Shown here in pieces: positions 1 to 13,420 of a DNA stretch of 64,000 nucleotides (the first letter of the stretch is position 1; each line of letters begins with the position of its first letter). The notes under the pieces are model-generated. The model was given only the letters and a program-made list of their open reading frames with translations, had not been told where the DNA came from and searched no databases. This stretch comes from Pseudomonas aeruginosa PAO1 (GTDB lineage Bacteria; Pseudomonadota; Gammaproteobacteria; Pseudomonadales; Pseudomonadaceae): NCBI RefSeq assembly GCF_000006765.1, contig NC_002516.2; one strand, given 5' to 3'. The position numbers and the translations under genes are program-made.

Positions 1-490
1 CGCCTGGCGCCGACCCTTCGCCCTGCTCGACCGCTGCGGCGGCTGGAGCGCCGACCTGTCCCTGCGACTGTTCCTGGCCTGGGAGTTCTTCGAGTCCGGT
101 TGGGAAAAGTGGAACGGCGAGAACTGGTTCGGCGATATCCAGTCGGCTTTCCCCTTTCCCTTCGACCGCCTGCCCGCCGCCTTCAACTGGGAACTGTCGC
201 TGTGGGCCGAACTGCTCGGCGCGCTGTTCCTCCTGCTCGGCCTCGGTACCCGCCTGACCGCCCTGGTGCTGATCGTCGTCACCCTGGTGGCGACCGCCGC
301 CGTACACTGGCCGGCGGAGTGGTCGAGCCTGGCGGAACTGGCCCGCGGCTACTCGATCACCGACCACGGCTTCGGCAATTTCAAGCTCCCGGCGATCTAC
401 CTGGCGGCGCTGCTGCCGCTGCTGTTGGCGGGGGCGGGGAAGCTGAGCCTGGACCACTGGCTCGGGCGGCGCCTGGGCCTGTCCCGCTAG
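1..490 (+). CDS. DoxX-family membrane protein (HvfX/BufD-like), 5'-truncated by the window (frame starts at base 2)
   Basis: Frame 2 is open from the window start to TAG at 488-490: [17 protein letters not shown]...[20 protein letters not shown]...VHW...[12 protein letters not shown], the DoxX/SURF4 pattern. Confidence 0.9.
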
Positions 491-507
491 GATTCGGCCA
501 GCCACGG

Positions 508-542
508 AAAAACCCCGGAACGCGATCGCCTCCGGGGGTTTT
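508..542 (+). terminator. Intrinsic terminator-like hairpin, possibly bidirectional
   Basis: AAAAACCCCGGA...TCCGGGGGTTTT: GC stem flanked by A and T tracts, 17 bp after the DoxX stop. Confidence 0.7.
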
Positions 543-573
543 CACAGCAAGCCAGAACCATCCCACCCACCGC

Positions 574-713
574 GTAGGGCGAATAGCGCCAACGGCGCTA
601 TTCGCCGATACACCGGACCCACCCCGGCGGATAACCGCAAGCGGTTATCCGCCCTACACCAAGACCGTCCCACCCACCACGTAGGGCGGATAGCGCCAAA
701 GGCGCTATCCGCC
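574..713. repeat. Cluster of three GTAG-family REP elements (BIME-like)
   Basis: GTAGGGCGAATAGCGCCAACGGCGCTATTCGCC (574-606), an inverted copy (626-657) and GTAGGGCGGATAGCGCCAAAGGCGCTATCCGCC (681-713). The spacer TCCCACCCACC precedes both copy 1 and copy 3. Confidence 0.9.
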
Positions 714-742
714 GATGCATCGACTCCACAAGGGCTGCGTCG

Positions 743-1498
743 TCATCCGCCCGCCCAATCGCGTTCCAGGGTTCCGAGCACGACACCCTGGGTCCGCAAC
801 GCTGCCAGCAACTCCAGCCCCGCCGCGTCGAGCGCTCCGGGCGCACTCCGCGCCTCGAGCGCCAGCGCCGCCAGGTGCTCGCGCCCGCTCAGGCGCCGTC
901 TCGCCAGCGACTCCAGCAGGCGGCAGGCCAGCGGAGTCAGGCGCGCGGTATGCACGCGATGCGAGGAATCGCGGTGCATCAACAGCAGGGTCGGTTCCGC
1001 AGGCGCTTCGGCGAGCGCGACGTCCTCTTCGAGCCGATGCACCGGCCAGCGATAGCCCAGCGGCAGCGCCAGGCTCGACAGCAGCGGCACCCCGTCGAGC
1101 AGGTCGCCTTCACGCCGATACGGCGGATCGTCGGGCTCGGCCAGGTAGAGGCGCGTTTCGCTCCATTCGAAGTGGGCCAACTCGGCTTGCCACGCCGGCC
1201 GATACTCGCCCCGCTGCCGCAGGTAGTCGACGAAGACCCCGGCGATACGGGTGAACAGGGGGGTATGGCTTCTCTCCTCGCGATAGAACTCGCGCACCAG
1301 GCCATGCCACTGCTGCTCGCCAAGCAGCCCGCGCAAGCGCGGGAAGCCGCTGGCAAGGAGGCCTTCGATGGCGTTGTAGAACAGCTCGCGGTAGACCCGC
1401 AGGCGACGTTCTTCGATGTCCGGCGGCGGCGCATTGCCAAGCGGGTCGCGCAGGTGCCGGGCGAGGCTGAACTGCTGTTGGCGCAGGCGCTCATCCAT
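743..1498 (-). CDS. DUF2063 / HvfC-BufC-type MNIO partner protein (RiPP recognition)
   Basis: 251 aa; [22 protein letters not shown] and ELAHFEW motifs; overlaps the DUF692 gene by 8 bp. Confidence 0.85.
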
Positions 1499-2321
1499 GA
1501 CGGCGTCCCTCGTCGCGTTGCCATTGGCGGATCTGCTCCACTTCCAGCAGCAGTTCGCCCAGCGGCGGATAGTTGAAGTCCCGCTCGAGCAGGGTCGGGC
1601 GCACGCCGAAGCGACGATAGGCGGCTCCGAGCAAGGCCCAGACGCCGGGCTTCACGGCGGCACCATGGGTGTCGATCTTCAGGTCCGGCGCCTCGTCGTA
1701 GTGCCCCGCCACATGGTAGGCGGCGACCCGCCCGGGCGGCAGCCGGACGAGGAAGTCGAGGGCGTCGTAGCCGTGGTTGCAGGCGTTGACGAACAGGTTG
1801 TTGACGTCCAGCAACAGGTCGCAGTCGGCCTCGTCGAGTACCGCGTTGACGAACTCGATCTCGCTCATCTCCCGGTACGGCGCTGCATAGTAGGAAATGT
1901 TCTCCACCGCGATGCGCCGCTCCAGGCGCTCCTGCGCCTCGCGGATGCGCGCCGCGACGTGACGCACCGCGGCCTCGGTGAACGGCAGCGGCAACAGATC
2001 ATAGAGATGGCCATCGTCGGAACAGTAGCTGAGGTGCTCGCTGTACAACGCGACCCGGTGGCGGACGAGGAAGCGTCGGGTCTGCTCGATAAAGGCGGCA
2101 TCCAGCGGCGTGGAGCCGCCGAGGGACAGCGAGAGACCGTGACAGGTCAGTGGAATGCGCTCCACCAGGCGCTCCAGGTCGGCACCGAAGGCACCGCCGA
2201 CGCCGATCCAGTTGTCCGGCGCGCATTCGAGGAAGTCCACCGCGCCGGGCGCCATCGCCAGCAGTTGCGGAAGCAGGCCGCGCCTCAGGCCGAGGCCGGC
2301 GGCGTTGTCGATCAGGGTCAT
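1491..2321 (-). CDS. DUF692 multinuclear non-heme iron oxidase (MNIO; HvfB/BufB/MbnB superfamily)
   Basis: 276 aa; GLGLR start, [36 protein letters not shown] and LLERD metal-ligand motifs all present. Confidence 0.95.
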
Positions 2322-2338
2322 GGGATAGCTCCGGAAAC

Positions 2339-2380
2339 GGCGACGCCCCCGCTTTCCCAGGGGAAAGAGAGGGCGCCGCC
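2339..2380 (-). other. Intra-operon RNA stem-loop between efhP and the MNIO gene
   Basis: On the minus strand, GGCGGCGCCC pairs with GGGCGUCGCC (one G-U) around an inner CUUUCCC/GGGAAAG stem; no U-tract. Confidence 0.65.
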
Positions 2381-2395
2381 AGGGTGTGGAAAGGC

Positions 2396-2863
2396 TCAGT
2401 GCTGGCCTTGCTCCAGCTTGCTGAACAGCCCGGCGGGCATCGGCTTGCCGTTGGCCTCGTAGGTCTTGCGCAGGTGTTCGTAGGCCTCGGCTTCGGAAAT
2501 GAAGCCGTCATGGTCGCTATCGATGCTGTCGAACTCACCGGCACGGTCCTTGGCCACCGCGAGGAACTCGGCGCGCGAGACCTTGCCATCGTGATCGGTG
2601 TCGGTTCGGGCAAAGGAGGCGTCGCCGCACTTGCCCTCCCCGCACTTGCCCTCGGCGCCGGCCTTGGCCGGGGTCTTCGCGGAGCCGCCGCTACCACACT
2701 TGCCTTCTCCGCACTTGCCTTCGCCGGCGCTCGCCGCCGCCACTTGCAGCCCCTGGCCCAGCGGCTCGACGGCGAACGCCGAACCGCCGAGCAGCATTCC
2801 CCCCACCAGTACGGCACCGAGCAGGCTGGCGGAAGTCTTTTGACGCGAATCGAAAACGGACAT
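2396..2863 (-). CDS. efhP: EfhP: Sec-signal protein with 4 EGKCG motifs and 2 EF-hands
   Basis: ATG at 2863 with GGAGAAGAAGC RBS; 155 aa; signal ending GSAFA; [10 protein letters not shown] at 2693-2722 and 2624-2653; EF loops [12 protein letters not shown] (2567-2602) and [12 protein letters not shown] (2486-2521). The provided ORF from 3118 is over-extended. Confidence 0.92.
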
Positions 2864-2995
2864 GCTTCTTCTCCACAGTAAACGCGGCCGGGCCGCAGGC
2901 GCGGCGCTGGTGGGCGCCGGTACGAACCGGGCGGCGGGACCTTCTGGGGTCGTCCCGGGCGCCGCGGTTCGGATGTGGCCATTTCGCCTGGGAGA

Positions 2996-3073
2996 TGTAT
3001 CGGGGGTGTATCGCCCGACACGTGGATTTGTACGCCGGAGGTATCGAAACCGCGCATGGATACAAAGCGATAC
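2996..3073. promoter_or_regulatory. Tandem GATAC(A) repeats, candidate OmpR-family (BfmR-like) sites
   Basis: Minus strand GATACACCCCCGATACA (2996-3012, 11-bp period); plus strand GATACAAAGCGATAC (3059-3073, 10-bp period); lies in the efhP / HD-GYP divergent gap. Confidence 0.55.
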
Positions 3074-3186
3074 GCAATCGAGCGCGGGCATGCCGACGAA
3101 GTGCCGGGCATCTCTCACTCCCGCCGGCCCATCTCGGCTACCGTTAGGAGACAGCCACCTGGCCCAGTCTCGAGGTCGAGCCCATC

Positions 3187-4431
3187 GTGCTGAAACGCAT
3201 TCCGGTAACCCAGCTTCGCCTCGGTATGTTCGTCCAGAGCCTTTGCGGCTCGTGGCTGGACCACCCGTTCTGGAAAAGAGGTGGCTTCCTGCTCGACAGC
3301 CAGGCCGACCTGCAGCGCCTGCGCGAAAGCGCCGTGAAGGAGGTCTGGATCGATGCCAGCAAGGGCCTCGACCTCCCGGAGGAAGCGGCGGTCTCGGCCG
3401 CTGCGGTCCTGCCGGTCACCATGCCGGCCGGCCCTTCGCCGGCGCGGGTCGCCCTGGAGGAGGAAATCCGCCACGCCGCCCTGCTCTGCAGCCGTGCCAA
3501 GGCCGCCGTGGTCAGCATGTTCCGCGACGCGCGCATGGGCCAGGCCATCGATACCGCGCATGCATCGGACCTGGTGGACGAAATCTCCGCCTCGGTGCTG
3601 CGCCATCCCAACGCGCTGCTCAGCCTGGTACGGCTGAAGACCTCGGATGAATACACCTACATGCATTCGGTGGCGGTCTGTGCGCTGATGATCGCCCTCG
3701 CCCGCCAGCTCGAACTGCCCGACCCGCTGGTACGCGAGGCGGGGCTGGCCGGACTGCTGCACGACATCGGCAAGATGGCGGTGCCCGATCCGATCCTGAA
3801 CAAGCCCGGCAAGCTCACCGACCCGGAGTTCGGCCTGGTTCGCCGGCATCCGCAGAACGGCGCGCGGATGCTGCTCGATTGCCGCCAGGTCAGCGCCCTG
3901 GTGGTGGATGTCTGCCTGCACCACCACGAGCGCATCGACGGCACCGGCTACCCCTTCGGCCTGGCGCAGGAGCAGATCAGCCTGCTGGCGCGAATGGGCG
4001 CGGTGTGCGACGTCTACGACGCGATCACCTCCGACCGTCCCTACAAGAAGGGCTGGAACGCCGCCGAGGCGATCCGACGCATGGCCGAATGGAACGGGCA
4101 CTTCGACCCGCAGGTGTTCCGCGCCTTCGTCAAGGCGGTGGGCATCTACCCGGTCGGCGCGCTGGTCAGGCTGGAAAGCGGGCGCCTCGGCGTGGTCCTC
4201 GAACAACACGGCCGCTCGCTGCTGACGCCACGGGTCAAGGTATTCTTCTCGGCCCGCTCGAAGGTGCCGATCCCGCAGCAGGTGGTAGACCTGGGTAGGG
4301 CCGGACAGACCGACCGAATCGTCGGCTTCGAGCCGGCGGAAGCCTGGAACTTCCGCAATCTCGACGAGATGTGGACGGGACTGGCCAAGTCCACGGGCTC
4401 TTATTTCGACGCGGGAACCGGAAATCCGTAG
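3187..4431 (+). CDS. HD-GYP c-di-GMP phosphodiesterase with N-terminal DUF3391
   Basis: 414 aa, GTG start; YTYMHS, HDIGK, HHERIDGTGYP and CDVYDAITSDRPYK motifs. Confidence 0.95.
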   Translation: MLKRIPVTQLRLGMFVQSLCGSWLDHPFWKRGGFLLDSQADLQRLRESAVKEVWIDASKGLDLPEEAAVSAAAVLPVTMPAGPSPARVALEEEIRHAALLCSRAKAAVVSMFRDARMGQAIDTAHASDLVDEISASVLRHPNALLSLVRLKTSDEYTYMHSVAVCALMIALARQLELPDPLVREAGLAGLLHDIGKMAVPDPILNKPGKLTDPEFGLVRRHPQNGARMLLDCRQVSALVVDVCLHHHERIDGTGYPFGLAQEQISLLARMGAVCDVYDAITSDRPYKKGWNAAEAIRRMAEWNGHFDPQVFRAFVKAVGIYPVGALVRLESGRLGVVLEQHGRSLLTPRVKVFFSARSKVPIPQQVVDLGRAGQTDRIVGFEPAEAWNFRNLDEMWTGLAKSTGSYFDAGTGNP

Positions 4432-4464
4432 ACGCCTTCCGCCCGCAAGCCGAGCACCGCTCCC

Positions 4465-4495
4465 GTAGGGCGCATAACGCGAAGCGTTATCCGCC
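4465..4495 (+). repeat. REP element
   Basis: GTAGGGCGCATAACGCGAAGCGTTATCCGCC. Confidence 0.85.
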
Positions 4496-4989
4496 GTTTC
4501 GCCGCAATCTCCGCCTGCTCCGCGTTGCTTTAAGCGCACCATCGTCGATACTGCTGGCAATCCGCCGACAGTTTTCAAGAGGCCATATGAGTCCGCTCCT
4601 GGAGACAATCGAAGAGCACAGCAGAAATGGCTGTGCTCCATCCAAAGCGTTGATTGCCCTGTGGTCCGCAGGCGCCGACCTGAGGGTTTCCCCGAGGAAG
4701 GCTGGCCGCCTATGCGAACTTGCCGTCGTTGCCGCAGCAGGGAAAGCAGGCATGCTCGAGAGCGAGATCGTTGCGGCACGCCGGGCCTATGCCGCCAGCC
4801 TGGGAGTGACGCTTAGCGGAGCGATCAGCAACGCCGACGAGCCGGTCCATATCCGCCACGCCGTCAGCAATTCCAATCACAACCCCAACGCCTCAAACCG
4901 TATCAACCTTGGGAGGGCCCGAGCGTATAAAAAAAGGCGCGAGGAAGGTGATTACTTCTTCATCGACACTTGAATCGCCTGCATAACCG

Positions 4990-5880
4990 TTATCTCCCCC
5001 GCGCCTCAACGGCAGCCATCTCCAGCAACCACCCCCGGAACGCCAGCATCGCGCTGGTCTCCCCCCGCGACTGCAAGCGCGTCAGCCAGTAGCTGCCGGT
5101 ACTCACTTCGGTGGCGAACGGACGCCGGATGCTCTCGCTGGCCAGTTGCCGGGCAAACATCGCCGCCGGCGCCAGGGCCACGCCGACACCCTGGCGGGCC
5201 GCCTCGAGCATGGCCAGCGAGGTGTCGAAGACGATGCTCCGGGTCAGTGGCGCGTGCGCCGGCAGTCCGGCCGCCTGGAACCACAGCGGCCACTCGTCGG
5301 CGCGGTAGGAGCGCAGCAGGGTGTGCTGCAGCAGGTCGGCGGGACTGTGCAACTGGGCGGCGACCTCCGGGCAGCAGAGCACCGTCAGCGGCGCCTCGAA
5401 CAACGCCAGCGCCTCGGTGCCGTGCCAGGCGCCGCCGCCGAAGCGGATCGCGTAGTCGAGCCCCTCGGCGGCGATGTCGACGCGGTTGTTGTGGGTGGAC
5501 AGGCGCAGATCGATGAAGGGATGGCGCGCCTGGAAGTCCTCCAGCCGCGGCAGCAGCCAACCGACCGTGAAGGTTCCGACCGCGCCGACGGTGAGCACGT
5601 CCCGGTAGTGGCCACCCTCGAAACGTTCCAGCAGGCCGGCGATGCGGTCGAAGGAGTCACACAGCACCGGCAGCAGGCTCTCGCCCTCGTGGGTCAGCAT
5701 GAGGCCGCGCGGCAGACGCTTGAACAGGGCCACGCCGAGACGCTCCTCGAGGCTCTTCACCTGGTGGCTGACCGCCGCCTGGGTCACGCACAGCTCGATG
5801 GCCGCGCGGGTGAAGCTCAGGTGCCGGGCCGAAGCTTCGAAGGCGCGCAGGGCGTTCAGCGGCAAATGGGGTCGAACCAA
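4990..5880 (-). CDS. ampR: LysR-family regulator AmpR
   Basis: (M)VRPHLPLNALRAFEASARHLSF...VTQAAVSHQVK. TTG start at 5880 preceded by GGAG gives 296 aa; divergent from ampC. Confidence 0.97.
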   Translation of the reverse strand: MVRPHLPLNALRAFEASARHLSFTRAAIELCVTQAAVSHQVKSLEERLGVALFKRLPRGLMLTHEGESLLPVLCDSFDRIAGLLERFEGGHYRDVLTVGAVGTFTVGWLLPRLEDFQARHPFIDLRLSTHNNRVDIAAEGLDYAIRFGGGAWHGTEALALFEAPLTVLCCPEVAAQLHSPADLLQHTLLRSYRADEWPLWFQAAGLPAHAPLTRSIVFDTSLAMLEAARQGVGVALAPAAMFARQLASESIRRPFATEVSTGSYWLTRLQSRGETSAMLAFRGWLLEMAAVEARGR

Positions 5881-5882
5881 TC

Positions 5883-5896
5883 TCTGCTCCAAATTT
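5883..5896 (+). promoter_or_regulatory. AmpR-binding box
   Basis: TCTGCTCCAAATTT in the ampR-ampC gap matches the AmpR box as I recall it. Confidence 0.65.
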
Positions 5897-5902
5897 TTCT
5901 AA

Positions 5903-7222
<1,320 letters not shown>

Positions 7223-7848: not shown

Positions 7849-10800
7849 TCAGCTCGCCGACTCCGCCTGCACGTCGCCGAACATCGCCTGCAGGCGGAGC
7901 AGGCAGGCATCGCACAGGGTGCGCAGTTCGTCGAGGCGGATGCCGGCGAGGATTTCCATGCCGCGCAGCGGATCGGCGCGGCGCAGGGCCTGCTCCAGCT
8001 CGCTGGCACGGCCGGCCAGGGCGCTGGCGCCAACGGTGGAAGCGCTGCCCTTGATGGTATGCAGGGTCGCGGCGCTGCCCTGGACATCGCCCTCGCCGAG
8101 CTGGCGTTCGAGCTGGGCGAAGAGGTCCTGCATGTCCGGAACGAAGCGCCGCAACACCTGGACGATCAGCTCCAGGCTGCCGCCGAAACGCCCGACGATA
8201 TCGCCCCGCGCCTCGACCAGTTCGCCCGCGTCCGCTGCCGTTGCCGGCGCGCCCCTGGCGCCGCTCCTGCCGAGATGACCGAGCAGGCAAAGCACCAGGC
8301 GCTCCTTGTCGATCGGCTTCGCCACATGGTCGTTCATGCCCGCCGCCAGGCAGGCTTCGCGGTCGGCCAGCGAGGCGTTGGCGGTCATGGCCAGGATCGG
8401 CAGCCCGGCGAAGCGCCCGTCGGCGCGGATTCTCCGGGTCGCCTCGAGACCATCGATATCCGGCATCTGCATGTCCATCAGCACCGCGTCGAACGGCACG
8501 CTCGCCTCCAGCACCTGCTGAACGCCCGCCAGCCCGCCGTCGGCGAGGGCCACCCGGGCGCCCTCGCTGCTCAACAGCTCGGCGGCGACCTGGCGGTTCA
8601 GCGCGTTGTCCTCCACTACCAGCAGACGCACGCCCCGCAACCGCTGGGTGCGCTCCACCGGGCGCGGCGGCGGGTTGGCCGGGGCGCCCTGTTCGCCGTG
8701 CAACGCATGCAGCACCGAGTCGGCCAGTTGCTTGGGCGTGACCGGCTTGGTGAGAAAATCGACGAAGGGCGGCGCGCTGTGGTCGCGCGCATCGGCCAGC
8801 ACCTCGCGGCCATAGGCGGTGATCATGATCACCATGGGCGGCGGCAGGTCGCCCTGCAACTGGCGGATCAGTTGCGCCGCGCTGAGGCCGTCGAGATCGG
8901 GCATGCGCCAATCCATCAGCACCACGTCGTAGCGACGGCCCTCGGCCATCGCCGCCTGGACCCGCGCCACCGCCTCGCTGCCGCTGCCGACGCAGTCGGC
9001 GCGCCAGCCGAGGGCGCCGACCGTGCGTTCGAGCAGCTCGCCGGCCACCAGGTTGTCGTCCGCCACCAGCAGCCGCAGCGGTTCGCCGGCCCCGGGGCAG
9101 GCCGCACGCAGCGGTTGGTCGTGGGCGACGTCGAGGTCCAGGTCGAACCAGAACCGGCTACCGCTGCCCGGCGCGCTCTCGACCCGCAATTCACCGCCCA
9201 TCAGGTCGACCAGGCGTTTGCATATGAACAGGCCGAGGCCGGTGCCGCCGAAGCGTCGCGAGGTGGACGCCTCGGCCTGGGTGAAACCTTCGAAGATGCG
9301 CTGCTGCTGTTCCGCGCTGATGCCGATGCCGGTGTCCGCCACCAGCACCCGCAGGCGCACCAGGTGGGCGTCGTGCGCCAGACGCCGCAAGCTCACCAGG
9401 ACGTGCCCGCGGGCGGTGAACTTCAGTGCGTTGCCGGCCAGGTTGATGAGGATCTGCTGCAGGCGCAGGCGGTCGCCGACCACCGCGCTGGGCAGCTCGG
9501 GATCGATGTCGAAGATCACCTCGACGTCCTTGTCGCCCTGGTTGCCGGAGAGCACCACGGCCAGGTCCTGCATCAGCGGCTCCAGCTCGAAGGGGAGCAT
9601 TTCCAGGACCAGTTTGCCGGCCTCGATCTTCGAGTAGTCGAGGATGTCGTTGAGCAGGCCGAGCAACGAGGTTGCCGCCGAGCTGGCCTTGTCCAGGTAG
9701 TCGCGCTGGCGTTCGTTGAGATCGGTCTGCCGGGCCAGTTGCAGCATGCCCAGCACGGCATTCATCGGCGTGCGGATCTCGTGGCTCATGTTCGCCAGGA
9801 ACGACGACTTCGCCGCGCTGGCGGCGTCCGCCTGCTCCTTGGCCTCGCGCAGGCGCGCCTGCAGTTGCTGGTCGCTGGTGATATCGATATTGATCCCGGT
9901 GACCTGCAGCGGGTTGCCGTCGGCGTCGCGCTCGACCTGCGCGCCGGCCTGGATGAAGCGGATGCCGCCGTCGGGCAGCACCACGCGGAAGATCACATCG
10001 TAGTTGCCGCGCCCCTCCACCGCCGCGCGCAGGCTGGCCTCGGTGCGCTCGAGGTCTTCCGGATGCAGGCGGCTGCGCCAATGCTCGTAGACCAGGCCGC
10101 CGTCGCGCAACGCCAGCGGCTGGCCATACATCTCGCACATGCGCTCGTTCCACTGCAGGCTGTCGTCGGCCAGGTTCCAGCGCCAGATGCCCAGGCGCGC
10201 CACGTCGGCGGCCATTTGCAACTGGTCGCGCGCCGCGGCCATCTCGCGCTCGGCGTTGCGCCATTCGGTGACATCGACGGCGATGCCCAGGTAGCCGTTG
10301 ATCGCCCCAGCCTCGTCGCGCAGGACGGTAACCGAAAGCGTCACGCTGAGCGGCGAGCCGTCCTTGCGCAGATAGGTCCATTCGCGGGTCTCGGCGCCCT
10401 CCTGTTCGGCCCGCGCCACCAGCACGCGGAAACCCTCCTCGCCCAGCTCCTGGCCGCGGGCGAGCAACTCCCGCTCGCTGTGCAGCAGGGTCGGCGAGGC
10501 CTTGCCGACCACCTCGTCGGCGCGGTAGCCGAGCATCCGCTCGGCACCGAGATTGAAGCCGCTGATGATGCCATCGCGGTCGAGGGTGATGATCGACACC
10601 TCGGACGCCGCCTGCAGCACGCTGCCGAGCAGTACGTTCAACCGACGCAGTTCGGCGGTACGCTCGGCGATCTGGTGCTCCAGGCCGGTATTGAGTTCGC
10701 GGATGCGGGCCTCGGCGGCCTTCTTCGCGGAGATGTCGCGTACGGTCTTCGAGGCGCCGACCACGCCGCCGTCCGGACCGAGGATCGGCGAGACGGTCAC

Positions 10801-12102
10801 CGCCACGTCGAGCAGGTGGCCATCCTGGTGCCGGCGCACGGTATCGAAGCTGACCACCTGTTCTTTACGGGCGATGCGGGCGAGGATGTCGAGTTCCTCG
10901 TTCTCCTTGGATGGCGGCACCAGCAGGTCCACCACCCGCCGCCCGACCGCCTGCTCCTCGCGGTAGCCGAACAACGCCTCGGCCCCGCGATTCCAGTCGC
11001 TGATGACGCCGTCGAGGCCGACGCCGATGATGCCGTCCGCCGAATTGCCGACGATCGCCGCCAGCCGCGCCTGGGTCGCCGCCTCCCGACGCCGGCGCAG
11101 GCGGCCGAGGGCGCTGGCGTTGACCAGCGCCGCCAGCAACAGGCTGACCAGGCTGCCGGCCAGGAACAGGATGCGCGGCGAAGGCTGGTGCAGGCGCTGG
11201 ACGAACAGCGGCAGTGCGCTGAACGCCATCTGCCAGTGCCGACCGTAGATCTCCCGCCGCAGCATGTGGCCGAACAGCCGTTGAGCCGGCGCTGCGGCGC
11301 CGTTGACGAAGAAGGGCACGGCAGCGCCGTCGCCGGTGACGTCGCTGAGTTCGAGGTGGATCGCCGCGTTGTCGATGGGCAACCCGGCCAGCACCTCGCC
11401 GGTCAGCAGCGGCGCATAGCTCCAGCCGAAGCCTTCGAGTTCGCGCTGGGGCCCCGGCGGTGGAGTGATGCCGCTGCGGTAGATCGGCATCAGGATGAGG
11501 AACGATTGCTGGCGCAAGCCGCTGGCCTGGACCAGGGTGATCGGCCCCGTCAGGCGCACCTGCCCGGTCTCCAGGGCGGCGCGGGCGGCCTCCCGGCGAT
11601 TGGCTTCCGAGGCGATGTCCAGGCCCAACGCCTGGCCGTTGCGCGCCACCGGCTCGATGTACTGGATGACGTAGCGCTCGCCATCGTGCGGAGTCAGTTG
11701 CTGGATGCGGAACTCCGGCTGGCCGTCGGCCCGCGCCTGGCGCAGGAACCCGGCCTCGTCGGCGGCCGCCACCCGGCGTATGAAGCCGAAGCCGCGGGCG
11801 CCGGGAAACTCGCGGTCGATGTCGCGGGTCAGGCTGTAGCGGCGGAACAGTTCGCGGTCGATGTGCACCTCGCCCGCCGTCAGCAAGGCACCGCGCACCC
11901 CGCGCAAGCCATACTGGTAGAGTTCCACGCGGCGGGTCACCGCCTCGGCCAGCAGTTCCGCCTCGCGTTCCAGCGCCATCCGCGCCTGTTGCTCGTTGAC
12001 CAGCGCCAGCCCCCAGGCGCCCAGCCCGGACAGCAGCAGTCCGAGCGCCAGTGTCGCGCCCGCCCAGCGGCTCAGCCTGAACTTGCTCTGTTGTACGTTC
12101 AC
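7849..12102 (-). CDS. Hybrid sensor kinase CHASE-PAS x3-HisKA-HATPase-REC-REC-Hpt
   Basis: 1417 aa; two TM segments around CHASE (IQYIEP...ALGLDI); MSHEIRTPMN; DTGIGI and GTGLGL; two VLMD receiver motifs; Hpt HTIKGSA. Confidence 0.96.
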   Translation of the reverse strand: MNVQQSKFRLSRWAGATLALGLLLSGLGAWGLALVNEQQARMALEREAELLAEAVTRRVELYQYGLRGVRGALLTAGEVHIDRELFRRYSLTRDIDREFPGARGFGFIRRVAAADEAGFLRQARADGQPEFRIQQLTPHDGERYVIQYIEPVARNGQALGLDIASEANRREAARAALETGQVRLTGPITLVQASGLRQQSFLILMPIYRSGITPPPGPQRELEGFGWSYAPLLTGEVLAGLPIDNAAIHLELSDVTGDGAAVPFFVNGAAAPAQRLFGHMLRREIYGRHWQMAFSALPLFVQRLHQPSPRILFLAGSLVSLLLAALVNASALGRLRRRREAATQARLAAIVGNSADGIIGVGLDGVISDWNRGAEALFGYREEQAVGRRVVDLLVPPSKENEELDILARIARKEQVVSFDTVRRHQDGHLLDVAVTVSPILGPDGGVVGASKTVRDISAKKAAEARIRELNTGLEHQIAERTAELRRLNVLLGSVLQAASEVSIITLDRDGIISGFNLGAERMLGYRADEVVGKASPTLLHSERELLARGQELGEEGFRVLVARAEQEGAETREWTYLRKDGSPLSVTLSVTVLRDEAGAINGYLGIAVDVTEWRNAEREMAAARDQLQMAADVARLGIWRWNLADDSLQWNERMCEMYGQPLALRDGGLVYEHWRSRLHPEDLERTEASLRAAVEGRGNYDVIFRVVLPDGGIRFIQAGAQVERDADGNPLQVTGINIDITSDQQLQARLREAKEQADAASAAKSSFLANMSHEIRTPMNAVLGMLQLARQTDLNERQRDYLDKASSAATSLLGLLNDILDYSKIEAGKLVLEMLPFELEPLMQDLAVVLSGNQGDKDVEVIFDIDPELPSAVVGDRLRLQQILINLAGNALKFTARGHVLVSLRRLAHDAHLVRLRVLVADTGIGISAEQQQRIFEGFTQAEASTSRRFGGTGLGLFICKRLVDLMGGELRVESAPGSGSRFWFDLDLDVAHDQPLRAACPGAGEPLRLLVADDNLVAGELLERTVGALGWRADCVGSGSEAVARVQAAMAEGRRYDVVLMDWRMPDLDGLSAAQLIRQLQGDLPPPMVIMITAYGREVLADARDHSAPPFVDFLTKPVTPKQLADSVLHALHGEQGAPANPPPRPVERTQRLRGVRLLVVEDNALNRQVAAELLSSEGARVALADGGLAGVQQVLEASVPFDAVLMDMQMPDIDGLEATRRIRADGRFAGLPILAMTANASLADREACLAAGMNDHVAKPIDKERLVLCLLGHLGRSGARGAPATAADAGELVEARGDIVGRFGGSLELIVQVLRRFVPDMQDLFAQLERQLGEGDVQGSAATLHTIKGSASTVGASALAGRASELEQALRRADPLRGMEILAGIRLDELRTLCDACLLRLQAMFGDVQAESAS

Positions 12103-12229
12103 CCGATATTCCGTCCCTGCGCCGGCCCGGCGCGGGGCAATCCCGCACTCCCTGCGCCTTTTCGTCCCAGAAGACTAGATCAAGCGGGCGGATTCCTCCG
12201 CCGAATCATCCGACCCCAGATATGACCGC

Positions 12230-13420
12230 TCACAACGACGTGCTTTTCAGCGCCTCCGCGTAGCGCAGTGCGGCGAACAGGGCGAGCAGCAGGCCGGCCA
12301 GCGCCAGCGCGGCGCCGACGTTGCCGATCGAGGCCAGGCCCATGCGTTCGCTGACCACGCTGCCGAGCAGCGCGCCGGCGCCGATGCCGACGTTGTACAG
12401 GCCGGAGAACAGCGCCATGGCCACGTCGGTGGCGTCCGAGGCGAGGCGCAGGACGCGGGACTGCTGGGCCAGGCCGAAGCACATGATCGACATGCCCCAG
12501 AGCAGGCTGAGCGCCATCAGCCAGGTCGGCTGCGCGGACAGCGGCAACAGCAGCGCCAGGCTGCTGCCCAAGGCGAGGATCGCGGCCAGCAGGAAGCCTC
12601 GCGGGAAAGCCTCGCTGTAGCGGCTGAAGAGGATCGAACCGAAGATCCCGGCGCCGCCGAACAACAGCAACAGCAGGGTGGTCGCCTCGCCGCTCATCTG
12701 CGCCACCTGCTTGGCGAAGGGCTCGATGTAGCTGTAGGCGGTGAACTGGGCGCTGATCACCACCACGGTCAGCACGTACAGGCAAACCAGCGCCGGGCGT
12801 CGGAACAGCATCGGCAGGCTGCGCAGGGAACCGGAGTTCTGGCTTGGCAGCAGCGGCAGGGAGCGCGCCAGGTAGAGCAAGGTCAGCACCGAGAGTCCGG
12901 CGATGGCCATGAAGGTGGTACGCCAGCCCAGGGCCTCGCCAACCACCCGCCCCAGCGGGATGCCCAGGACCATCGCCAGGGTGGTGCCGGTGGCCAGCAG
13001 CCCTAGCGCCTTGGCCTGCTGTCCCGGCGGCGCCACGCGCACCGCCAGCGAAGCGGTGATGGCCCAGAACACCGCGTGGGCGAAGGCAATGCCGATCCGG
13101 CTGAGCATCAGCACCTGGAAGCTCCAGGCCAGCCCGGACAGCACGTGGCTGGCGATGAACAGCAGGAATACCCCGACCAGCAGCTTGCGCCGCTCGATAT
13201 TGCGGGTCAGCAGCATCATCGGCAACGAGGCCAGCGACACCACCCAGGCATAGATGGTCAACATCAGGCCGACCTGCGAGGTGGGCATCTCGAAGCTGTG
13301 GCCGATGTCGCTGAGCAGGCCGACCGGGACGAACTCCGTGGTGTTGAAGATGAAGGCGGCCAGGGCCAGGGCGATCACGCTCAGCCAGCTGCCGCTGCGG
13401 GTTTCGGAGGTGCTGTCCAT
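12230..13420 (-). CDS. sotB: MFS sugar-efflux-type transporter (SotB/YdeA family)
   Basis: 396 aa from ATG 13420; [17 protein letters not shown] signature; about 12 hydrophobic segments. Confidence 0.88.

Follow-up and report, generated by a model that had tools for sequence, protein, structure and literature searches.

For ten years EfhP has been investigated as the sole EF-hand Ca2+ sensor of Pseudomonas aeruginosa, with links to virulence, iron uptake and oxidative-stress tolerance. Its gene lies within the first ~3 kb of a 64 kb stretch of P. aeruginosa PAO1 DNA (contig NC_002516.2; the whole stretch that was analysed is referred to below as the window), next to genes encoding an oxidative enzyme dependent on multinuclear non-haem iron (MNIO, DUF692) and a DUF2063 protein. 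The locus raises the question of whether this calcium sensor is itself the precursor of a peptide that is ribosomally made and then modified post-translationally (RiPP). The analysis points to an hvf/oxazolin ('captophorin', Buf_EGKCG) RiPP system of P. aeruginosa, in which EfhP would be the precursor, modified by PA4106 and PA4105, exported, and joining a Cu(I)-binding arm to EF-hands; judged from the sequence, this reading has a probability of about 75 %.

The connection between EfhP and MNIO-dependent RiPP synthesis is not new. The sequence-only reading that drew attention to the locus could not confirm whether it had been published, and both publication and annotation do precede the present work: Manley 2024 described the hvf operon as conserved in P. 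aeruginosa (PMC11252979), Leprevost 2025 described EGKCG/EF-hand chimaeras and cited EfhP as an example, and the protein is named 'HvfA family oxazolone/thioamide-modified RiPP metallophore' in NCBI and UniRef. In addition, a 2025 'captophorin' preprint includes P. aeruginosa in its list of organisms with MNIO-PME1 clusters (bioRxiv 10.1101/2025.11.18.689057), and the interaction between PA4106 and PA4105 has been validated by co-immunoprecipitation (Humphreys 2024, PMC11445079). In work on calcium signalling, the 2014 EfhP paper remarked on the operon with DUF692 and DUF2063 genes, and a 2024 paper in mBio noted the four EGKCG repeats of EfhP and proposed iron sensing. For all published EfhP biochemistry the protein was produced in E. 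coli with the MNIO absent, as in the 2022 characterization of residues 33–155 (PMC9132961). The new points of this analysis are minor ones, namely efhP alleles with one to five EGKCG units, a hairpin within the operon and homologues with no MNIO gene nearby.

Gene order and family membership of the cluster

The open reading frames and the sequence bear out the proposed arrangement, in which an operon running from efhP through the DUF692 gene to the DUF2063 gene faces a DoxX gene. The first three genes form a single co-directional unit on the minus strand, with efhP and the MNIO gene 74 nt apart, and, as read from the sequence, the DUF2063 start codon (ATG) and the MNIO stop codon share 8 nt (ATGGATGA). 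The DoxX gene lies tail-to-tail with the DUF2063 gene across a gap of 252 nt and has lost its 5' end at the window edge, so that 162 of ~169 codons are present and ~7 are missing; the full length is put at ~169 codons because the orthologue at the Pseudomonas paraeruginosa locus (L001) has 169 aa. The extent originally given to the cluster, 1–2863, is correct, and the promoter region with its BfmR box reaches ~3075. The G+C content of the cluster (~68 %) matches the local value and the cluster is therefore not an island. No second copy of the MNIO, DUF2063 or DoxX gene is present in the 64 kb window, and neither a Rfam scan at gathering thresholds nor a tRNA scan of the whole window returned a match.

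Family calls were made with the curated NCBIfam cut-offs and with Pfam. In profile searches for the HvfA, HvfB and HvfC families, as had been proposed from the sequence alone, the HvfA domain, HvfB and HvfC all passed, and HvfX did so as well. EfhP scored 32.4 bits against the HvfA-family domain NF050137 KCGExKCG_twice (cut-off 19.5), the MNIO 409.5 bits against the HvfB family NF003818 (cut-off 360), the DUF2063 protein 251.6 bits against HvfC NF050145 (cut-off 142) and the DoxX protein 152.4 bits against the HvfX family NF050144 (cut-off 80). The corresponding Pfam matches are MbnB_TglH_ChrH for the MNIO (331.9 bits), DUF2063 (83.2 bits) together with NGO1945_C, a domain of the RiPP recognition element (RRE) type (69.8 bits), for the partner, and DoxX (80.8 bits). 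Among structures, the best counterpart of the MNIO is PDB entry 3bww, a diiron HvfB homologue (248 bits), and the partner weakly matches 3dee. All the MNIO motifs are present (HGLSLS, SEHLS, VEN, DVNN, HVAGH, DTHG and LERD), and residues H61, H96, E140, D172, N175, H203, H207, D217, H219 and E246 lie in conserved motifs. In HvfB, residues N175, D242 and H244 are essential, and N175 and the D-x-H motif (DTHG) of the window enzyme are their counterparts.

The sequence-only reading had described EfhP as a Sec signal followed by four EGKCG motifs, and a closer look at the protein upholds this. The N-terminus is of the Sec type, with R7 and K9 in the n-region, a hydrophobic core at ~10–27 and A29-F30-A31 ahead of V32, and SignalP 5 likewise predicts a signal peptide (PMC9132961). 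The protein divides into the signal peptide (residues 1–31), a disordered EGKCG core (~32–80) and an EF-hand pair (81–150). The motifs are arranged as two pairs, at residues 48–52 and 53–57 and at residues 71–75 and 76–80. In a six-frame search of the window EGKCG occurred only as these four motifs of EfhP, which excludes chance. The Pfam profiles EF-hand_1, _5, _6 and _7 all score above their cut-offs in EfhP, and EF-hand domains are the only ones found in it, with no DUF2282. An AlphaFold2 model built from 32 homologues (mean pLDDT 55) assigns no secondary structure to residues 30–77 (pLDDT <50) and a twice-repeated helix-loop-helix with a short strand bridge to residues 81–150 (pLDDT 64–81), the one confidently modelled part, so that the core is predicted to be disordered, as a RiPP core should be, and the EF-hand pair to be folded. 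After the predicted cut at A31 the mature protein has 124 residues, and the calculated mass of unmodified residues 32–155 is ~12,717.8 Da. Recombinant EfhP binds Ca2+ with a Kd of 13.7 uM (PMC9132961).

Among the closest known counterparts of the cluster is HvfABC-HvfX/oxazolin of nontypeable Haemophilus influenzae, which combines a Sec-signal precursor carrying paired motifs with an MNIO (HvfB), a DUF2063-RRE partner (HvfC) and a DoxX protein (HvfX). Unlike HvfA, which has three motif pairs, EfhP has two, as well as a C-terminal EF-hand pair that is absent from HvfA; and unlike in the Haemophilus hvf locus, the DoxX gene shares a second, convergent operon with the gene for a PA4103-like haem membrane protein, and BfmRS controls all of these genes. 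EfhP falls into the chimaera class of Leprevost 2025, in which two EF-hand_5 domains are attached to an EGKCG domain that is short and unstructured, and the AlphaFold2 model agrees with the one presented there. The hydrophobic N-terminus of the chimaeras is regarded in that study as a predicted transmembrane helix, whereas the AFA|VE site and the SignalP 5 prediction (PMC9132961) favour a cleaved signal peptide in EfhP. The 'captophorins' fontiphorin and gonophorin share with EfhP the EGKCG repeats and the combination of an MNIO with a PME1 partner, and form 5-thiooxazole and bind Cu, but are repeat-only peptides without an attached folded domain (bioRxiv 10.1101/2025.11.18.689057).

The cluster had been called an oxazolin/bufferin-type one, and of this label the oxazolin half stands on the HvfA-domain, HvfB, HvfC and HvfX scores, whereas the bufferin half is rejected: bufferin precursors are DUF2282 or Buf2 proteins, the latter with 6 or 12 Cys, Pfam gave no DUF2282 match, and the MNIO reached 256 bits against BufB, below the cut-off of 310. 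The Caulobacter vibrioides bufferins Buf1 (DUF2282) and Buf2 resemble the present system in having a Sec-signal precursor, an MNIO, a DUF2063 partner and DoxX, and contain thiooxazole and buffer periplasmic copper, but belong to a precursor family different from that of EfhP. Methanobactin MbnABC is similar in that its MNIO oxidizes Cys into a copper ligand. Membership of that system was also rejected, since MbnB TIGR04159 gave 35 bits against a cut-off of 325, the partner is of the HvfC type, with no MbnC present, and the precursor carries a Sec signal; in methanobactin a leader peptide takes the place of the Sec signal, the chemistry is that of oxazolone/thioamide, and the product, a small chalkophore, is secreted to take up copper.

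Related loci and efhP alleles

When one genome per species was scanned, 80 related loci were obtained, and because these were collected by the pattern EGKCGEGK, motif conservation and the proportions of loci with an MNIO or EF-hands are biased and are not to be read as frequencies. The precursor, MNIO and DUF2063 genes occur in that order on one strand in about 50 of the 80, and the position of the DoxX gene varies among convergent, upstream, downstream and absent. Three types of precursor were distinguished, those whose Cys block precedes the EF-hand pair on the N-terminal side (Pseudomonas and Stenotrophomonas), those with Cys blocks flanking the pair on both sides (most other Lysobacterales) and those with no EF-hand. 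In a tree of MNIO sequences the window enzyme belongs to a clade of 13 (support 97/95), 12 of which share the precursor architecture of EfhP, with a single one lacking EF-hands. Since precursor type tracks the MNIO tree, enzyme and precursor have been inherited together.

The two-sided topology was seen in the Lysobacterales loci L041–L047, L049, L053–L060, L063, L070–L071 and L078, and the EF-hand part has been lost at L064 (P. shirazensis), which lies inside the Pseudomonas MNIO clade. Homologues lacking an MNIO or DUF2063 gene within 6 kb come mostly from the P. fluorescens group (L010, L014–L026, L028–L032, L034, L036–L037, L039–L040) and carry a signal peptide, the QGY motif, 2–7 EGKCG units and EF-hands. 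In the non-pathogenic P. putida KT2440, by contrast, DUF692 and DUF2063 genes lie next to the efhP homologue. Two records labelled Pantoea, L004 (Pantoea sp. Cy-639) and P0097 (Pantoea sp. Tr-811), have EfhP and MNIO sequences that nest among those of the P. putida group, which suggests mislabelled or contaminated assemblies or recent gene transfer.

A motif that follows the signal peptide, PLxQGY, is present in 74 of the 80 precursor reading frames, including those without EF-hands, and may be the element that the HvfC partner recognizes; P. paraeruginosa shares the QGL variant of P. aeruginosa, and Stenotrophomonas lacks the motif. A published single-site alanine scan of FonA revealed no individually essential residue ahead of the core.

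All close protein relatives come from P. aeruginosa, in which efhP alleles differ by whole EGKCG units, with 1–5 motifs and lengths of 127–160 aa (proteins P0003–P0021). The allele of the window (155 aa, four motifs) is present on at least 1000 contigs, followed by a 150 aa allele with three motifs (325 contigs), a 132 aa allele with two (20 contigs), a 160 aa allele with five (about a dozen contigs) and a 127 aa allele with one (a few contigs). These length differences fit slippage of the 15-nt tandem repeats. 'Full-length' EfhP has been stated to be encoded by only 64 % of genomes (PMC9132961), a figure to which, as a conjecture, the EGKCG length variants may contribute.

Promoter, intergenic elements and neighbouring genes

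The efhP promoter is bound by the response regulator BfmR, as located by electrophoretic mobility shift assay (EMSA) as well as by chromatin immunoprecipitation sequencing (ChIP-seq), and efhP is the top BfmR-activated gene (11,268-fold), alongside PA4103–PA4104; in this precursor-first MNIO operon every gene is co-activated by BfmR (PMC4148453, PMC8025907). The sequence GATACAAAGCGATACG at 3059–3074 on the plus strand fits both published BfmR motifs, of which GATACAnnGC matches at 3059–3068 and TACAA-N3-GATACA, with one mismatch, at 3061–3074. A tandem GATACA-N5-GATACA is found at 3012..2996 on the minus strand. Both blocks are kept in P. paraeruginosa (L001), and the BfmR box sits in the region shared by efhP and the divergent HD-GYP gene. 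Further BfmR-like matches at 37274 and 38026 are within chance expectation, and a sigma-70 promoter scan of positions 1–3400 gave no matches. At the syntenic L001 locus (8303–12285), a membrane protein resembling MsrQ/ferric reductases is encoded ahead of the DoxX gene, and beyond it come genes for a BfmS-like histidine kinase and a BfmR-like response regulator, so that the functional neighbourhood extends past the left edge of the window.

The RNA of the efhP/MNIO spacer is predicted to form a hairpin, with a minimum free energy of -39.7 kcal/mol over 86 nt (z = -3.3), and spacers with a folding z below -2 were found at 21 of 40 related loci, the z-scores there being rough ones based on mononucleotide shuffles. 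The hairpin is a candidate intra-operon attenuator or transcript stabilizer. Between the convergent operons, the hairpin at 505–545 is likely to be a bidirectional terminator, one that a simple terminator scan missed because its loop exceeds 8 nt; this hairpin and repetitive extragenic palindromic (REP)-like elements occupy the gap between the DoxX and hvfC genes. The GC-rich hairpin with a T-run ahead of efhP is kept in P. paraeruginosa (L001). The genes at 3187–7222 are ordinary chromosomal content of P. aeruginosa; the PDC-family beta-lactamase gene among them and the close protein relatives, all from this species, locate the window in P. aeruginosa from PA4104 onward. Coordinates are collected in Table 1.

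Table 1. Features of the efhP cluster and its right-hand neighbourhood (window coordinates)
Feature	Position	Strand	Evidence or remark
DoxX / HvfX-family membrane protein gene, PA4104-like	2..490	+	NCBIfam NF050144, Pfam DoxX
GC-rich hairpin between A-run and T-run (AAAAACCCCGGA...TCCGGGGGTTTT)	505..545	.	Read from sequence
REP-like palindromes: 71-nt direct repeat in two copies (83% identical); three 13-nt inverted-repeat hairpins, each perfect	552..729	.	Repeat search
HvfC-family partner gene (DUF2063 + C-terminal RRE-type domain), PA4105-like, 251 aa	743..1498	-	NF050145, Pfam
HvfB-family MNIO (DUF692) gene, PA4106-like, 276 aa	1491..2321	-	NF003818, Pfam, PDB
Predicted RNA hairpin in the 74-nt efhP/MNIO spacer	2338..2381	-	Folding
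efhP, PA4107-like, 155 aa	2396..2863	-	Open reading frames, NCBIfam, Pfam, sequence
Two canonical 12-residue EF-hand Ca2+-binding loops, EfhP residues 88–99 and 115–126	2602..2567, 2521..2486	-	Pfam EF-hand_1, _5, _6, _7
Second EGKCG pair, Cys74 and Cys79	2624..2653	-	15-nt tandem repeat encodes pair
First EGKCG pair, Cys51 and Cys56	2693..2722	-	15-nt tandem repeat encodes pair
PLxQGY region, EfhP residues 32–39	2750-2770	-	Compared across 80 loci
GC-rich hairpin followed by TTTACTGT, directly 5' of the efhP ribosome-binding site	2883..2897	-	Terminator-like match
BfmR-binding region, efhP promoter	2996..3074	.	Motif matches, published EMSA/ChIP-seq
HD-GYP-type cyclic di-GMP phosphodiesterase-like gene	3187-4431		Divergent from efhP
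AmpR/PenR-like LysR regulator gene	4990-5892	-	
PDC-family class C beta-lactamase gene	6029-7222		940 bits vs cut-off 865; ~3 kb from cluster

Proposed maturation of EfhP and competing explanations

The family assignments, the gene order, the intact key motifs and the co-inheritance come from this analysis itself; the chemistry is one that we infer from better studied relatives. HvfBC and FonBC act on both Cys residues of an EGKCG pair and convert each to a 5-thiooxazole that binds Cu, the mass falling by 4 Da per Cys and absorbance appearing at ~302–305 nm, and the modification of HvfA, once described as oxazolone/thioamide, has been reassigned to this group (bioRxiv 10.64898/2026.06.05.730506). 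The copper-binding heterocycle and thio groups initially envisaged hold as far as Cys modification in the EGKCG family is concerned, with 5-thiooxazole now taking the place of oxazolone/thioamide. By analogy, the PA4106–PA4105 complex would recognize pre-EfhP in the cytoplasm and convert Cys51, Cys56, Cys74 and Cys79 into 5-thiooxazoles, after which Sec would export the modified protein and signal peptidase would cut after A31. Mature EfhP would then be a periplasmic protein in which a flexible, Cu(I)-binding thiooxazole arm is joined to a folded, Ca2+-binding EF-hand pair. The spacer hairpin probably lets the precursor message exceed that of the enzyme, while DoxX and the PA4103-like haem membrane protein, encoded by the BfmR-controlled convergent operon, probably supply membrane redox support. 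The idea that P. aeruginosa exports a metallophore calls for a correction: export, as predicted from the signal peptide, would take EfhP only as far as the periplasm, and the product would be a 124-residue protein with a folded Ca2+ domain and not a small diffusible peptide.

Several observations weigh against this model. The literature search found no experiment showing modification of EfhP or copper binding by it, and no copper link to the expression or regulation of PA4104–PA4107; the phenotypes described for EfhP relate to Ca2+, iron and H2O2, not copper. EfhP misses the full-length HvfA equivalog NF050188 (24 bits versus a cut-off of 95) and is therefore a family member at the domain level only and not an HvfA orthologue. 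Alleles with a lone EGKCG in a block, or with one or two motifs in total, circulate in P. aeruginosa, and the varying motif number indicates that the cysteine count is not tightly constrained; for FonBC the EGKCG pair is the minimal substrate and a lone repeat is left unmodified (bioRxiv 10.1101/2025.11.18.689057), so that some efhP alleles may be only partly modifiable. At the putative recognition motif P. aeruginosa carries QGL where most relatives have QGY, and for many EfhP homologues of Pseudomonas no MNIO gene lies within 6 kb.

Some of these points would be accommodated if EfhP were only a periplasmic Ca2+ sensor, whose cysteines stay as thiols or disulfides or bind iron, with the MNIO and its partner acting on nothing or on a distant substrate. 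Experiments firmly establish its Ca2+ binding and the phenotypes that depend on Ca2+, the mBio 2024 paper proposes that the EGKCG cysteines sense Fe, and both the MNIO-less homologues of the P. fluorescens group and the strain-to-strain variation in EGKCG count agree with such a role. Nevertheless, we regard it as quite improbable, since efhP is the first gene of an MNIO operon whose genes are all co-activated by BfmR, the MNIO is intact with its essential motifs in place, the motif in EfhP is identical to the one modified by HvfBC and FonBC, and precursor architecture tracks MNIO phylogeny. Nor does the cluster offer another candidate substrate, as its small intergenic reading frames contain no Cys repeats and no other Cys-repeat reading frame was found there. 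The cut-offs passed, the MNIO motifs, the gene order, the MNIO tree and the lack of another Cys-repeat reading frame in the cluster all speak, at the level of sequence, for EfhP as the RiPP substrate, as first proposed.

EfhP could also be modified by PA4106 and PA4105 for a purpose other than copper buffering, such as redox or H2O2 protection, the handling of iron or of zinc/cadmium (through the overlap of BfmR and CzcR) or Ca2+-dependent contact with a partner. Without efhP, H2O2 resistance is lower and iron-uptake proteins are present in altered amounts, a connection of the hvf operon with oxidative stress has been made (Manley 2024, PMC11252979), DoxX homologues give protection from oxidative or sulphur stress, there is overlap between the BfmR regulon and the metal regulon of CzcR, and the literature search gave no copper-related expression data for the efhP operon. 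What makes this an unlikely account is that the characterized EGKCG/thiooxazole products (oxazolin, fontiphorin, gonophorin and the bufferins) all bind copper, and that the N and S ligands of thiooxazole are soft and favour Cu(I).

If EfhP is a copper-binding RiPP, its two halves might act on each other. The fusion of the Ca2+ and Cu modules is found repeatedly, in two topologies, and the type of precursor goes with the MNIO tree, which argues for joint action of the modules rather than mere residence on one polypeptide. A tentative and rather doubtful extension would make EfhP a periplasmic protein of two metals, with copper handling by the thiooxazole arm governed by whether Ca2+ occupies the EF-hands, or the reverse, and with part of the calcium-sensor phenotypes (virulence, iron uptake and H2O2 tolerance) depending on the modification.

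The bioinformatic link has already been drawn in the RiPP field, whereas the calcium-signalling papers examined have not taken it up, iron sensing having been proposed in 2024; the value of the finding is therefore that it prompts an experiment on EfhP itself, rather than one of discovery. BfmR is activated in cystic-fibrosis lungs, and the efhP operon is its strongest target. If native EfhP carries four copper-binding thiooxazoles, the recombinant protein used in all binding and structural work would have missed its main modification, and the phenotypes of efhP deletion may blend calcium with copper or redox effects.

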